A stretch of 64,000 nucleotides of DNA from Octopus sinensis (Eukaryota), in the NCBI RefSeq assembly GCF_006345805.1, contig NC_043023.1, forward strand, positions 11,594,001-11,658,000. The letters run 5' to 3'. Below the pieces are notes generated by a model, which had not been told where the DNA came from, did not search any database, and saw only the letters and a program-made list of their open reading frames with translations. The translations under genes and the position numbers were made by a program. This document shows, piece after piece, positions 55,741 through 61,700 of this stretch. The first letter of the stretch is position 1. Each line of letters starts with the position of its first letter.

Positions 55741-56901
55741 CCAGCACTGCATCGACCAGCCTCCGTGCCAGCGGCATGTAACGAACACCACCCAATTGTG
55801 GCTGTTGCCAGCCTCACCTGGCCTCCATGCCGGTGACAGGTAAAAAACACCATCCGAGCGTGGCCGTTCACCAGTCTTGTTTGGTCTGGCACTTGTGTCG
55901 GTGGCATGTAAAAAGCACCCACTACACTCACGGAGTGGTTGGCATTAGGAAGGGCACCCAGCTGTAGAAACATTTCCAGATTAGATTGGAGCCTGGTGCA
56001 GCCTCCTGGCCTCCAAGACCCCAGTTGAACCATCCAACCCATGCTAGCATGGAAAGTGGACGTTAAACGATGATGATGATGATGATATATGTCAGTATAC
56101 GCTGTGGGTACATAGGTGGGCTATCCACAGCTCTACATTGATGTTTTACTATTTAAACGAGGTAGGAGCATGAAGGTCAAAGGATGATGATGATGACGAA
56201 AACACAACAAAGACAAAATCAATGTCACTCAAAACTTTTATTCCTTATTTCCATTCCTTTATTCTCTCCTAACAAGTTCTTCAAAAACTCCAGCACAATT
56301 CTCTTCAAACATCAAAGTTCACACTGTGTTGATATATTTAGATATATCCATGATACTGAAGTTGATATTCATGAAATTGAAGTTGAATACATCAAGCTTG
56401 AAGAGGAATAAACCTTGTCTTGTAGAAGACAAAAAACTCATAATTGTTGATATGTTGTAATAAATTTTTATATTGATATTTTTACACTTGTGTATGAATA
56501 CTCAAATGTCTACTTAAGTGACCTTTTTGAGGGAATGATTCACCACAGATACCACAATGATATGGCCTCTCTCCTGTATGAACAGGTTTTGTGAATAGTC
56601 AACTATTTCTAAAGTATGATTTACCAGAGATATCACAATGATATGGTTTCGCGCCTATATGTGTACGTTTCTGTTTAGTCATGACACAACTCTGAGAGAA
56701 ATATTTGCCACAAATATCACAATGATATGGCTTCTCTGCTATATGTGTAAATTTGTGGTTTTTCAACGTACCCCTTTGCGAAAATGATTTACCACAGATA
56801 TTACAATGATATGGCCTCTATCCTGTATGTGTACGTTTGTGGTCAGTTACGTAACTACTATGAGAGAATGATTTACCACAGATATCACACTGATATGGCT
56901 T

Positions 56902-57957
56902 CTATCCTGTATGTGTACGTTTGTGTTCAGACAAGACAACACTTCTACAAAGCGATTTACCACAAATATCACAATGATATGGCTTCTCTGCTATGAGTGT
57001 AAGTCTGTGTGTTATCAACGTACCCCTGTCAGAGATTGATTTACCACAGATATCACAATGGTATGGCTTCTCTCCTGTATGTGTACGTTTGTGGTCAGTT
57101 ACGTAACTACTATGAGAGAATGATTTACCACAGATATCACAATGATATGGCTTCTCTCCCGTATGTGTACGTTTGTGGTCAGTTAAGTTACTAGTTTGAG
57201 AGAATGATTTACCACAGATATCACAATGATAGGGCTTCTCCCCTGTATGAATACGGTTGTGTCTAGTCAAATAACCACTCTGAGAGAATGATTTACCACA
57301 GATATCACAATGATACGATTTCTCTCCAGTATGAATACGTGTGTGAATAGTCAACTGATTATTATAGGAGTATGATTTACCACAGATATCACAATGGTAT
57401 GGCCTTTCTCCTGTATGTGTACGTTTGTGGTCAATTACGTAACCACTATGAGAGAATGATTTGCCACACATATTGCAATGATATGGCTTCTCTCCTGTAT
57501 GAATGCGTTTGTGTGCATGTAAGTCATTATTTTGAGAGAATGATTTACCACAGATATCACAATGGTATGGCTTGTCTCCTGTATGTGTAAGTTTGTGTTT
57601 AGTCAAGGTACCAGTTTGAGAGAATGATTTCCCACAGATATCACAACGATAGGGCTTCTCTCCCGTACGTTTATGCTTGTGTCTAGTCAAATGACTACTG
57701 TGAGAGAATGATTTACCACAGATATCGCAACGATATGGCTTCTCTCCTGTATGAATACGTTTGTGGTCAGTTAAGTGACTACTACGAGAGAATGATTTAC
57801 CACAAATATCACAATGATATGGCTTTTCTCCTGTATGTGTATGTTTGTGCATAGTTGAGACACCACTCTGACAGGTATTAGAGTGATATGGCCTCTCTCC
57901 TGCATCAGTGGTTTTTGGTTGATTTAAAGGATTCATCATGAGAGGATAATTTGTCAT
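56902..57957 (-). CDS. C2H2 zinc-finger protein ZNF-8 (family A), ~11 fingers; 5 more decayed fingers follow the TAG, to 56482
   Basis: ORF 56902-57966, first ATG 57957; acceptor at 58378-58380. Confidence 0.85.
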
Positions 57958-58924
57958 ACATATCACAATGATAGAGTTTATTTCATTTCTATGAGAATGT
58001 TTGTGTTCAGTTGTGTCACTATTTTTAGGGAATAATTTAATGCCTTTTCTTTCAGCTGAGATCTTGCTTAATATCTAAATCAGGAGGTGACAATTGTCTA
58101 CGCCTTTGTAAAGTCATCCAAGCTTAATTAACCTGTAAAGCAATCATCTCCTCTATATTCCAGACAGCAAAGACTTCAAATTGTTGCTGTTAATTCCATC
58201 GTCCAGAAGAAATATTTCGCAATATTTTGTCATAGACTTTCTTTATATAAAAACGTAGATGTATTGATGAATGCTCCTTATAAATATATCGTCTTCCTTT
58301 AGTCAATAAAAGTTGATAAACTATCAAAGGCACATCTGAATGAAGTAATTTCTTTTATGTCAACAGGATGTGATATTCTGAAATAGAAAAAAAGAGTCAG
58401 TGAGATAAAGAGGATAGTTAAATGACACAGCAATTCAACATTGCAAATATTCTTTTCTACTCTAGGCACAAGGCCCAAAATTTATGGGGAGGGGCCAGGC
58501 AATTAGATCGACTCTAGTATGCAACTGGTACTCAATTTATCAACCTTTAAAGGATGAAACACAAATTCGACCATGATGAAAACACAACAAAGACCAAATC
58601 AATGTCACTTCAAACTTTTATTCATTATTCTCATTCCTTTATTCTCTCCAAACAAATTCCTCAAAAACTCCAGCACAATCCTCTTCAAACATCAAAGTTC
58701 TCACTGTGTTGATATATTTAGATATATCCATGATACTGAAGTTGATATTCATGAAATTGAAGTTGAATACATCAAGCTTGAAGAGGAATAAACCTTGTCT
58801 GGTAGAAGACGAAAAACTCATAATTGTTGATATGTTGTAATAAATTTTGATATTGATATTTTTACACTTGTGTATGAATACTCAAATGTATACTTAAGCG
58901 ACCTTTTTGAGGGAATAATTTACC

Positions 58925-59599
58925 TCAGATATCACAATGATAGGGTTTCTCTCCCGTATGTGTACGGTTGTGTTTAATCAAGTTGCTACTATTAGAGAAT
59001 GATCTACCGCAGATATCACAATGGTATGGCTTCTCTCCTGTATGTGTACGTACGTGCTTAATTAAGTTGCTACTATGAGAGAATGATCTACCACAGATAT
59101 CACAATGATATGGTTTCTCTCCAGTATGTGTACGTTTGTGTTTAGTCAAGGCATCATGTCGAGTCAATGATTTACCACAGATATCACAATGGTATGGCTT
59201 CTCTCCTGTATGTGTGCGTATGTGTTTAATTAAGTCACTACTGTGAGTGAATGATTTACCACAGATATCACAATGACAGGGCTTTTCTCCTGTATGTGTA
59301 CGGATGTGTGCAGTCAAATGACCACTCTGAGAGAATGATTTACCACAGATATCACAACGATATGGCTTTTCTCCTGTATGTGTACGTATGTGTTTAATTA
59401 AGTCACTACTCTGAGTGAATGATTTACCACAGATATCACAACGATATGGCTTTTCTCCTGTATGTTTATGTTCATGTATAGTCGAGACACCACTATCAGA
59501 GAATGATACACTGCAGGTATTAGAGTGATATGGTTTCTCACCTGTATCAGGGTTATTTGCTTCAGTTAAAGGATTCATCATGAGAGGATAATTTGTCAT
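58925..59599 (-). CDS. C2H2 zinc-finger protein ZNF-9 (family A), 6 intact fingers; TGA in the seventh
   Basis: ORF 58925-59608, first ATG 59599; acceptor at 60020-60022. Confidence 0.85.
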
Positions 59600-60687
59600 A
59601 AATATCACAATGATAGTGTTTATTTCATTTCTATGAAAATGTTTGTGTTCAGTTTTGTCACTATTTTTAGGGAATAATTTAATGCCGTTTCTTTCAGCTG
59701 AGATCTTGCTTAATATCTAAATCAGGAGGTGACAATTGTCTACGCCTTTGTAAAGTTATCCAAGCTTAATTAACCTGTAAAGCAATCATCTCCTCTATAT
59801 TCCAGACAGCAAAGACTTCAAATTGTTGCTGTTAATTCCATCGTCCAGAAGAAATATTTTGCTGTTGTTTTTCACAGATTTCCTTTATAAGATGAGTTTG
59901 ATGTATTGATGAATGCTCCTTATAAATATATCGTCTTCCTTTGGTTGATGGAAGCTGATAAAATATCAGAGGCACACCTGAATGAAGTAATTTCTTTTAT
60001 GTCAACAGGATGTGATATTCTGAAACAGAAAAAAAAGAGTCAGTGAGATAAAGAGGATAGTTAAATGACATAGCAATTCAACATTGCAAATATTCTTTTC
60101 TACTCTAGGCACAAGGCCCATAATTTGGTGGCAGAGAGCCAGTTGATTAGATCAACCTTAGTACGCAACTGGTACATAATTTATTGCCCTGGAAAGTTGA
60201 CCTTGGCGGAATTTGAACTCAGAATGTAACGGCAGACGAAATACCTATTTCTTTACTGCCCACAAGGGGCTAAACACAGAGGGGCCAAACAAGGACAGAC
60301 AAACAGATTATATTGACCCCAGTGTGTAACTGGTACTTAATTTATCGACCCCGAAAGGATGAAAGGCAAAGTTGACCTCGGCAGAATTTGAACTAAAAAC
60401 TGTAGTGACAGACGAAATACCGCTAAGTATTTCGCCGGGCATACTAATGTACGACATCAACCCCTTAAACACTCTTAGTCATTTAACGTCAATATTTGCA
60501 GGGGTCAGAATTCATTGAGGCATTGAGCCTTTTGCTGCCTCAACTGGATCTTGTGCCGGTGGCATGTAAAAAGCACGATTCAAACTTGGTTGATGTCAGT
60601 GGCATGTAAAGAATACCCACTACACTCTCAGAGTGGTTGGCGTTAGGAAGTGCATCCAGCTCTAGAAATATTACAAGATCAATTTGG

Positions 60688-61088
60688 GGATCTTTTCCAT
60701 TTGAACGGCAGTTTTTTAAAATAATTTCCACATAACTAAACACTTTTAAACTTCGTATACTGGTAGAATGTGTTTATAAAACATCTTTTTCTCTTGGCTT
60801 TATTGAGAAAATTCTATAGTTTGTAAGATATTTGTTGTTTTTTTTCTTCAATTTCAATCAATCAATGACGTCTATTGAGGTGAAAATATTCTGTGCCGTA
60901 TGAATATGTCCCTCGTTTAAGAAACAGATTGGGTTTATTTACATTTGTCAAGAAAACAAGATTCCCTTCCCCTCACCCTAACCCGAAAATAGATTGAAAT
61001 GCAATAGATCAATACTAGGGTCATAATTATGGGTGACAATTTCATATGACACCGCTAGAAAAAACTGCCGTTCAAACCGAAATGATCC
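60688..61088 (+). mobile_element. GGATC-TIR MITE, full length, inserted in an RTE-derived element
   Basis: Perfect 8-bp TSD CAATTTGG at 60680-60687 and 61089-61096. Confidence 0.93.
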
Positions 61089-61599
61089 CAATTTGGTGCC
61101 TGGTGCAGCCTCCTTGGCTTGCCAGGCCTCAGTCAAACCGTCCAACCCATGCCAGCAATGAAAACAGACGTTAAACAACTCCGAAAGGATGAAAGTGGAT
61201 CTCATCGGAATGATTTCTTAATTACCCCCCCCCCCCCGGGGGGGGGCTAACATAGAAGGGACATGTGCTTCCGACGCCTTGTGCTTCTAGTAGAAAGGAT
61301 TATCATCGTCATTATTTTATTCACTTGGCGGCAAGCTCAAATAAGACCGCAGCCGAATTCGCCTTTTATCCTTTTCGAGAAAAACTCAGGTCCCGCCTGA
61401 ATGAAACATTGCTGGCCCTGGGTCATAATTTCATATGACACCGCTAGAAAAAACTGCCGTTCAAACCGAAAAGATCCGTTGGATTCGTTCCGGTCTTTTT
61501 CTTCGTCGCATTCAGTCAACAACTTCACTTTCAAATTTCCACCAGATTATTATAACAAAGTCTACTCACATATTCTATCCTACGACTGTTTCCAGTTCA

Positions 61600-61700
61600 T
61601 GACTTCACCGCAAATACCTTAAGAAATAATCCGTCTTGTGGGCGTGGCATCGGGACGTGACGTCATGCCATCGCTCTTCCGGTTCCCTCCCCCACAGTAT
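61600..61700. promoter_or_regulatory. CpG-rich promoter-like segment
   Basis: GGGCGTGGC (Sp/KLF-like), GTGACGTCA (CRE) and CTTCCGG (ETS-like) within 70 bp; minus-strand donor candidate AAG|GTATTT at 61617. Confidence 0.45.

Follow-up and report, generated by a model that had tools for sequence, protein, structure and literature searches.

Can two zinc-finger exons that lie in tandem, with no promoter recognizable between them, serve as alternative last exons of a single gene? The question is raised by a 64-kb stretch of cephalopod DNA (the window; contig NC_043023.1, positions 11,594,001 to 11,658,000) in which two minus-strand zinc-finger (ZNF) units, ZNF-9 and ZNF-8, follow one another closely. 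A first-pass annotation proposed that one upstream first exon is spliced to either unit, so that different DNA-binding proteins arise from one promoter, by a logic like that of clustered protocadherins. The answer we favor is that the pair is probably a by-product of birth-and-death evolution, a tandem duplication of a terminal exon whose distal copy lacks a start of its own and is decaying. The anatomy of the units, the boundaries of their duplication, their coding defects, and the comparison with a sister family are direct observations.

The window is a cluster of Krueppel-type C2H2 zinc-finger genes of cephalopod (Octopus) type. A regular-expression scan of its full length (38% GC) finds about 110 C2H2 fingers, arranged as nine arrays on both strands, with copies of long interspersed elements (LINEs), short interspersed elements (SINEs), and miniature inverted-repeat transposable elements (MITEs) in the gaps between arrays. 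ZNF-8 and ZNF-9 both consist of tandem C-x2-C-x12-H-x3-H fingers joined by TGEKP-like linkers and match the Pfam families zf-C2H2 and zf-H2C2_2 (E = 3e-44 to 2e-86). The scan counts six fingers in ZNF-9 and 12 in ZNF-8, while Tandem Repeats Finder reports 7.6 and 15.8 copies, respectively, of an 84-bp repeat. By protein search, the closest named proteins to ZNF-9 are generic poly-ZNFs, including those of Octopus sinensis, O. vulgaris, and O. bimaculoides (48-63% identity). The unique N-terminus of ZNF-8 gave no match, the intact 502-amino-acid ORF product of a neighboring unit gave no close one, and exact look-ups with alternative start choices gave none; these absences carry little information, as even intact neighboring genes were missed. 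Big tandem C2H2 expansions in coleoid genomes were already known (PMC9068888, PMC12513265); the cephalopod C2H2 expansion paper of 2025 does not address exon structure.

A terminal-exon architecture common to four units

One architecture is found in the four minus-strand units of the window: units A and B, ZNF-8, and ZNF-9 (Table 1). In ZNF-8 and ZNF-9 the unit opens midway through an intronic SINE and continues with a strong 3' splice site, about 420 nucleotides (nt) of non-coding leader, the finger array, and a 3' untranslated region (UTR), ending about 45 nt beyond two AATAAA signals. The first exon bases are 60019 in ZNF-9 and 58377 in ZNF-8. The AG-exclusion zone of both acceptors measures 72-73 nt; they also carry a CTGAC motif and 85% pyrimidines at positions -22 to -3, a quality that only 13 of the 7311 AG sites of the window reach. 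Units A, B, and 8 share the conserved acceptor block of ZNF-9, as do the plus-strand family described below and O. sinensis paralogues. At the polyadenylation (poly(A)) end, the two AATAAA signals are spaced 21 nt apart, as they are in units A and B, and a GT-rich block comes next; across the four units this is the most conserved region of the 3' UTR. In four-way alignments of A, B, 8, and 9, conservation is highest in the acceptor block and in the poly(A) block, which argues that these units are, or were until recently, genuine terminal exons.

Most of the positions given in the first-pass annotation stand. Alignments of leaders and 3' UTRs bear out the tandem units, both acceptors fall exactly where they had been placed, and the plus-strand TTTATT motifs at 56237 and 58617 are present, each with a second copy 21 nt off. 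A third-unit remnant, formerly drawn at 55590-55740, is real as well; it spans 55569-55736 and is 88% identical to the last two fingers of ZNF-8. The upstream edge of the ZNF-9 unit needs correction, as the tandem block does not stop at about 60130 and reaches about 60198, inside the SINE.

Two donor-like sites on the minus strand are found in unit 9 only (slashes here and below mark the splice junction). CAG/GTGTGC at 59980-59972 lies 40 nt into the exon, at a place where units 8 and B have CAGATGTGC, and CAG/GTGAGA at 59544-59536 lies in the first TGEKP linker. Such sites could permit splicing out of the ZNF-9 exon.

Boundaries of the duplication

By BLAST, the leader region of unit 9 (59566-60126) is 93.8% identical to that of unit 8 (57924-58483), and the 3' UTRs (58573-58924 and 56193-56544) are 94.6% identical; in global alignments the 5' flanks are 91.1% and the 3' flanks 94.2% identical. 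The duplicated block opens within the SINE, at about 60198 in unit 9 and at 58572 in unit 8. Unit 9 has the complete SINE (60134-60450). Unit 8 retains the 3' tail only, which begins abruptly at 58572 and directly adjoins 58573, the last base homologous to the unit 3' end. Past the second AATAAA the two units remain homologous for about another 45 nt; from there, unit 8 continues into an (ATC)n-rich flank also found in units A and B, and unit 9 runs into the junction. Upstream context stays with the upstream copy, and downstream context with the downstream copy. Boundaries of this kind mark a non-homologous tandem duplication, in which 1.6 kb, from the middle of the intron to a point just beyond the poly(A) site, were copied. 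Units A, 8, and 9 all have the SINE immediately before the acceptor, so the SINE is older than the family.

The same alignments bear on whether the tandem arrangement is an artefact of assembly, produced by collapse or expansion of a repeat or by serial placement of two haplotypes. Repeats abound in the region, 61225-61246 holds an odd C13G9 junction, and A-runs in other parts of the window carry frameshifts that point to a noisy assembly. However, haplotype duplicates would be nearly identical, while these flanks differ by 6-9%; the arrays differ in sequence as well as in repeat number, and the 5' and 3' contexts are different on the two sides of a clean junction. Because the flanks have diverged this far and the arrays differ, we set the chance of an artefact close to nil. 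The assembly duplication that the first pass had named as fatal to its own proposal is not borne out.

The events behind these boundaries may be reconstructed as follows. A gene of this clade would have a short non-coding first exon with its promoter and, 0.5-4 kb downstream, one large terminal exon that starts with a leader of 350-440 nt and the ATG, contains the entire finger array, and closes with the 3' UTR and poly(A) site. The terminal-exon unit alone was copied in a recent non-homologous tandem duplication, which broke within the intronic SINE at one end and about 45 nt beyond the poly(A) signal at the other. The remnant is what survives of an older third copy, so that the unit was duplicated at least twice. 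ZNF-9 retained the upstream context. ZNF-8 was left with no 5' exon and probably no promoter of its own, and its array is decaying. The arrays of both copies later turned over by intra-array duplication and exchange.

The spacer and the putative start of ZNF-8 transcripts

The ZNF-9 poly(A) signal and the ZNF-8 acceptor are separated by a spacer of 239 nt, about half of it SINE tail, with two CpG dinucleotides, 36% GC, and no TATA. Each part of it has a counterpart upstream of unit 9, and it contains no new sequence. ARAGORN finds no tRNA-like sequence in 55000-64000, and of the SINE only the 3' tail is left in the spacer. As far as the sequence tells, then, the first-pass observation that no exon-1 homologue or promoter motif lies between the units is upheld, and the reason is that ZNF-8 is a partial gene duplicate.

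Could ZNF-8 nevertheless be an independent gene, starting in the spacer or at the presumed acceptor block, so that each unit is a self-contained single-exon gene? Some 75-100 nt upstream of CAG/A are conserved among paralogues, octopus core promoters are poorly characterized, and start sites can come from sequence derived from transposable elements (TEs). The conserved block, however, has the full features of a 3' splice site, with a long pyrimidine tract, CTGAC, a 72-nt AG-free zone, and an invariant CAG, and TEs come as near as 45-85 nt upstream of it in different copies. The base composition of the spacer and the lack of tRNA-like sequence also speak against a start there. We consider an independent ZNF-8 very improbable.

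Since ZNF-8 has no 5' exon of its own, only a start upstream of ZNF-9 could give ZNF-8 transcripts. Provided that the locus is transcribed, polymerase continuing past the ZNF-9 poly(A) site would meet the ZNF-8 acceptor 239 nt on, and some transcripts could end in ZNF-8 as a passive alternative last exon. The proximal ZNF-9 acceptor is equally strong and is transcribed first, and should therefore dominate. Occasional use of ZNF-8 as a distal last exon is plausible from the arrangement of sites. Promoter absence, transcription, splice choice, and loss of function are here inferred.

Coding state of the two units

The stretch from acceptor to ATG has stops in all three frames in both units and contains three upstream ATGs in ZNF-9 and seven in ZNF-8. 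With every leader frame closed, any shared first exon would be non-coding, and each unit would encode its own protein. A dead, frame-shifted finger (HYHCDIYDK...) precedes the ATG in both units; it is also present in unit A, and is therefore old. The first finger is degenerate (YHSNTC) in both ZNF-8 and ZNF-9, and the ATG lies within finger-derived sequence.

Members of the family, units A and B included, end in a conserved terminal finger followed by TAA. Neither ZNF-8 nor ZNF-9 has an uninterrupted open reading frame (ORF) that reaches this finger and stop. In ZNF-9, a TGA (58927-58925) replaces the second Cys of the terminal finger, and the ancestral TAA is found at 58864-58862. In ZNF-8, the ORF ends at a TAG (56904-56902) in a TGEKP linker, and two of its fingers (starting at 57729 and 57057) lack a zinc ligand. 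The tail that follows carries a TAG (56820-56818), a TGA (56601-56599), His-to-Gln and Cys-to-Ser ligand losses, and a one-codon deletion, and ends with the conserved terminal finger and then TAA (56484-56482). Altogether ZNF-8 has three in-frame stops and four lost zinc-ligand sets. Within ZNF-8 a three-finger block is present twice, and both copies have the 'IAEKPY' linker defect, so expansion of the array went on after the damage. Of the parts that had been ascribed to each unit, the acceptor, leader, ATG, fingers, and AATAAA are present; the stop is not in its family position, as both ORFs end before the conserved TAA.

Finger arrays compared with their flanks

The terminal finger is 93% identical between ZNF-8 and ZNF-9, like the flanks, while identities between internal ZNF-9 fingers and the fingers of ZNF-8 never go above 89%. 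This hardly surpasses the match of such fingers to unit A (85%), though the flanks of unit A are only 78% identical. Recent finger duplicates within arrays are 94% identical in ZNF-9 and 96% identical in ZNF-8. The contrast noted in the first pass, differing arrays between near-identical flanks, is real (at most 89% versus 91-94%). It is a general outcome of intra-array unequal exchange and flank gene conversion in poly-ZNF genes, and by itself it does not separate neutral turnover from selection for different specificities. The 5' flank is a mosaic, in which stretches of about 300 nt are about 99% identical and short patches about 70%. A relative-rate test gives equal numbers of derived flank changes in the unit 8 and unit 9 lineages (23 and 23), with no asymmetry.

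Very recent intra-array block duplications, with the same finger present up to five times, are seen in unit A (3982-6608) and in the array at 28716-30619. Both carry frameshifts in the A-run of the TGEKP linker (GAGAAAAACC), which are either true mutations or homopolymer errors of assembly.

Several observations count against decay as the account of this pair. Long ORFs persist in both units (224 codons with six intact fingers in ZNF-9, 351 codons with nine in ZNF-8), so that truncated proteins still able to bind DNA are possible, and at about 6% divergence the survival or loss of an ORF is weak evidence in either direction. Acceptors and poly(A) sites are intact in both units. Frameshifts elsewhere in the window fall in A-runs, and given this, some of the coding defects could be artefacts of assembly; the stops in ZNF-8 and ZNF-9 are substitutions. 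Diversifying selection on cassettes would likewise be compatible with flanks at 94% identity around arrays that do not exceed 89%.

A sister plus-strand subfamily with its own upstream module

Plus-strand units of the window and O. sinensis paralogues have a homologous acceptor, TCTATAATTTCAG/AACATCA, followed by a leader of about 350 nt and an intact MEKSEKL... start. Upstream of the plus-strand units P2 (28689), P4 (40804), and P5 (52028) is a conserved module of about 340 nt, here called M. It contains an NRF1-like palindrome, ACGCATGCGCAT, a motif resembling a cAMP response element (CRE) and an ETS site, TGAYGTTGACWTCCGG, and, about 165 nt beyond the latter, an invariant donor, C/GTAAGTATTAAAC (GTAAGT). 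Each M-bearing unit has one sense copy, 0.5-3.6 kb upstream of its acceptor. The truncated units P1, P3, and B are without the module, and no copy occurs near the minus-strand units. A separate upstream module with a conserved donor in this sister family implies that the acceptor block is spliced to, which also speaks against a start of ZNF-8 at that block. M is probably the private promoter and non-coding exon 1 of the plus-strand subfamily.

P4 and P5 have the only fully intact ZNF ORFs in the window (391 and 502 amino acids, ending ...HTGVKGKG) and belong to an approximately 11-kb segmental duplication of 94% identity (38860-41979 and 50121-53536). The usual mode of expansion of the plus-strand subfamily would appear to be whole-gene duplication. 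ZNF-8 is an exception produced by a small duplication, rather than a case of a general cassette design.

For comparison we used an 89-kb segment of an O. sinensis chromosome, L001. Its TEs are up to 98% identical to those of the window, and its ZNF leaders 78-80%. It was rejected as the orthologous locus, as TEs and units of the plus-strand family are all it shares. A gene model there, P0012 (305 amino acids), covers 10001-79113 of L001, a range of 69 kb that begins at the ATG and so gives no 5' exon; skipping three other ZNF units, it connects the beginning of a ZNF array with exons some 50 kb farther downstream. Annotated gene models in octopus ZNF clusters can be chimeric.

The candidate first exon upstream of ZNF-9

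The first-pass annotation took a region 1.6 kb upstream of ZNF-9, here called U, as promoter and exon 1. U holds the only cluster in the window of an ETS core, a full CRE, and a GC/CACCC-box (CCGGAAG at 61682-61676, TGACGTCA at 61665-61658, and CCACGCCC at 61647-61640), and its ratio of observed to expected CpG is 1.0, against 0.58 window-wide. The donor originally chosen, AAG/GTATTT at 61617, is weak; a better one, TAT/GTGAGT, occurs 48 nt downstream at 61569, at the start of an element designated X. U is thus a reasonable guess for a promoter. It has no homologue within the window or L001. The order of its motifs agrees with that in module M only when U is read on the plus strand, so by the grammar of M it points away from ZNF-9. 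U is flanked by a truncated X (61480-61572, minus strand) and by a full inverted copy, X' (62335-62645, plus strand), and may be bidirectional or serve a plus-strand gene outside the window.

Element X is a low-copy sequence of about 300 nt with a CCAAT-like motif, TATAAAG, and the donors AAG/GTGCTT and CG/GTAAGT. It always adjoins a MITE end, and its copy at 8271-8553 lies 1.05 kb upstream of the unit A acceptor. In the minus-strand subfamily X is a candidate for the 5' exon or for the beginning of the intron, and the 5' end may be formed by X, U, or both. The interval 56193-58616 is free of copies of U, X, and M.

Four other assignments were rejected. A match of 33-48 nt between 61526-61572 and 767-814, considered as a conserved exon 1, is the start of element X. 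The suggestion from MAFFT that U is a diverged copy of X finds no support from nhmmer or from Smith-Waterman scores against shuffled sequences. Nor does U align significantly with module M, the likeness being one of motif order only, on the opposite strand. The MITE, whose interior has CRE-like, CCAAT, and TATA-like motifs, was dropped as a family promoter, since the seven of ten copies directed toward a ZNF unit are indistinguishable from chance. This MITE has the terminal inverted repeat (TIR) GGATCTTTTCGGTTTGAACGGCAGTTTTTT and is present in at least ten copies or fragments in the 64 kb of the window, compared with one or two in the 89-kb O. sinensis locus. The TIR pair at 61829-61858 and 62272-62308 encloses nothing but a SINE.

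The proposal that a single promoter near 61.6 kb, with its non-coding first exon, feeds either ZNF-9 or ZNF-8 by alternative splicing, with different specificities and a choice that is used or regulated, can now be weighed. Much of the evidence above is compatible with it: ZNF-8 is without a 5' exon of its own, both acceptors are strong and nearly identical, both poly(A) sites are intact, the arrays differ within flanks 94% identical, and U, with donors at 61617 and 61569, is the sole CpG-rich cluster of its kind nearby. Moreover, Drosophila lola proves that alternative 3' zinc-finger exons can operate behind shared 5' exons. Against the proposal, premature stops occur in both units and the ZNF-8 tail is heavily damaged, there are two units and a dead remnant only, and the sister family has one private first-exon module per gene. 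U is without a homologue near other family members, and the motif order of M directs it to the plus strand. The proximal acceptor, as strong as the distal one and transcribed 1.6 kb earlier, would by default favor ZNF-9. On balance we regard a used or regulated choice as unlikely. One part of the earlier interpretation survives, namely that ZNF-8 has no 5' exon of its own, as attested by a junction running from mid-SINE to past the poly(A) site. An evolved cassette system is not supported, in view of the stops, the number of units, and the sister family.

Comparison with known systems

The octopus C2H2 clusters resemble vertebrate KRAB-ZNF and cyprinid FiNZ-ZNF clusters in having 84-bp finger repeats, TGEKP linkers, and a whole array in the terminal exon behind a small upstream exon. 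All three evolve by local tandem and segmental duplication in TE-rich surroundings, with rapid array turnover, birth and death, and many partial or pseudogene copies. A two-exon design is described for KZNF and FZNF genes (PMC10547256). The octopus units differ in that no KRAB or FiNZ effector is found in the upstream exon, the first exon being non-coding, and in that the ZNF-8 duplicate is a terminal exon alone.

Shared 5' exons with alternative 3' zinc-finger exons, the topology of the first-pass proposal, are known from Drosophila lola, and also from Broad, fruitless, tramtrack, and mod(mdg4). Alternative 3' exons of lola give 20 isoforms, 17 of them with a unique zinc-finger motif (bioRxiv 10.1101/132027). 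Likewise, ZNF-9 and ZNF-8 stand in tandem as terminal exons, have separate 3' splice sites and poly(A) sites, and, judged by sequence content, have no promoter between them. Unlike lola isoforms, which share constitutive coding exons that include the BTB domain, ZNF-8 and ZNF-9 could share nothing coding, and a shared upstream coding domain is absent, the leader frames being closed in both units. lola has about 20 intact cassettes, demonstrated transcripts, and isoform-specific phenotypes, as against two damaged units known from sequence. It is decidedly unlikely, if worth stating, that copying of promoter-less terminal exons behind an existing first exon sometimes builds small lola-like loci, with ZNF-9 and ZNF-8 a young, still-used case of two specificities under one regulatory input. 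Use of the units as alternative last exons, if true, would be a route undescribed in cephalopods to new DNA-binding specificities under an existing promoter, and would bear on the debate about how the huge octopus C2H2 repertoire is regulated.

The likeness to vertebrate clustered protocadherins is limited to the abstract idea of tandem variable exons that diversify one locus. Variable exons of protocadherins are first exons with their own promoters, spliced to shared constant 3' exons. The ZNF units have the reverse topology: they are terminal exons with their own poly(A) sites, no constant exons follow downstream, and the spacer has no promoter-like sequence. Cephalopod protocadherins themselves are reported to have arisen by full gene duplication and not by the clustered mechanism (PMC9068888).

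Decay of a terminal-exon duplicate, the reading preferred here, places ZNF-8 closest to unprocessed partial pseudogenes. It is a genomic copy rather than a retrocopy, keeps an intron-exon boundary, is without the parental promoter and first exon, and has accumulated stops and ligand losses (three and four sets). It differs from such a pseudogene in keeping an acceptor, a poly(A) site, and a 351-codon ORF, and residual use as a distal terminal exon is possible. The locus illustrates several features of cluster evolution: small non-homologous duplications can copy the terminal exon only, turnover is faster in arrays than in flanks, and copies lacking a first exon undergo decay. The architecture put forward here, comprising the acceptor, the leader, and module M with its invariant donor, could aid annotation of octopus ZNF genes, non-coding first exons included.

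Coordinates of features and neighboring elements

Table 1. Features of the window, in window coordinates except where L001 is named.
Feature	Position	Strand	Basis or remark
ZNF-9 unit, the duplicated block in its upstream copy, reaching from the SINE tail beyond the poly(A) site	58573-60198	-	alignments to unit 8
ZNF-8 unit, downstream copy, keeping the ancestral 3' flank common to units A and B	56193-58572	-	alignments
Unit A	3661-7218	-	about 78% identical to ZNF-8 or ZNF-9
Unit B	11131-11972	-	truncated unit
Third-unit remnant, last two fingers and start of 3' UTR	55569-55736	-	88% to ZNF-8 56447-56636, with a 24-nt deletion; 78% to ZNF-9
SINE copies directly upstream of the ZNF-9 acceptor, holding the 5' duplication breakpoint	60134-60450	-	alignments
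ZNF-9 3' splice site (AG at 60021-60020, CTGAC branch-point-like motif, pyrimidine tract)	60020-60094	-	AG-exclusion zone, conservation
ZNF-9 leader, non-coding, three upstream ATGs, dead frame-shifted finger at about 59581-59681	59600-60019	-	closed frames; match to finger DNA 70-77%
ZNF-9 ORF, 224 codons from first ATG, six intact C2H2 fingers	58925-59599	-	ends at TGA 58927-58925
ZNF-9 poly(A) region, two AATAAA (plus-strand TTTATT at 58617 and 58638) and GT-rich downstream element	58575-58643	-	alignment
Spacer from ZNF-9 poly(A) signal to ZNF-8 acceptor, 239 nt	58378-58616	-	post-poly(A) sequence, SINE tail at about 58452-58572, 3' end of intron
ZNF-8 ORF, 351 codons from first ATG, 9 of 11 fingers intact (C2H2 pattern)	56902-57957	-	ends at TAG 56904-56902
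Decayed tail of ZNF-8 array, five fingers behind the first stop	56482-56901	-	stops, ligand losses
ZNF-8 poly(A) signals (plus-strand TTTATT at 56237 and 56258)	56237-56263	-	alignment
U, candidate promoter and exon 1 of the first-pass annotation	61577-61828	-	CpG, motif cluster
Truncated copy of element X (positions 2-72), abutting U	61480-61572	-	nhmmer E = 4e-7
X', full inverted element X, head-to-head with U; CCAAT-like motif, TACAAAG, donors AAG/GTGCTT and CG/GTAAGT	62335-62645	+
Element X, full copies	506-814, 8271-8553	-
Module M (P2, P4, P5, in order)	27355-27639, 38205-38557, 47743-48090	+	sequence conservation
Module M, inverted partial copy	26416-26557
Module M in L001	5748-6076, 18381-18697, 32979-33296		three of four O. 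sinensis units
MITE of about 400 bp with 30-nt TIRs, in the putative intron upstream of ZNF-9	60688-61088	.
MITE copies and fragments	815-1022, 8554-8960, 12100-12458, 26532-26921, 27689-28145, 30694-31483, 46631-47188, 60688-61088, 61419-61477

The C13G9 homopolymer junction mentioned above lies in TE-derived sequence upstream of ZNF-9 and may be an oddity of the assembly or of a TE junction. LINE-type ORFs for reverse transcriptase and endonuclease occur at 12909-16208 and 42122-44951; a LINE copy at 43711-44322 is 98% identical to one in L001.

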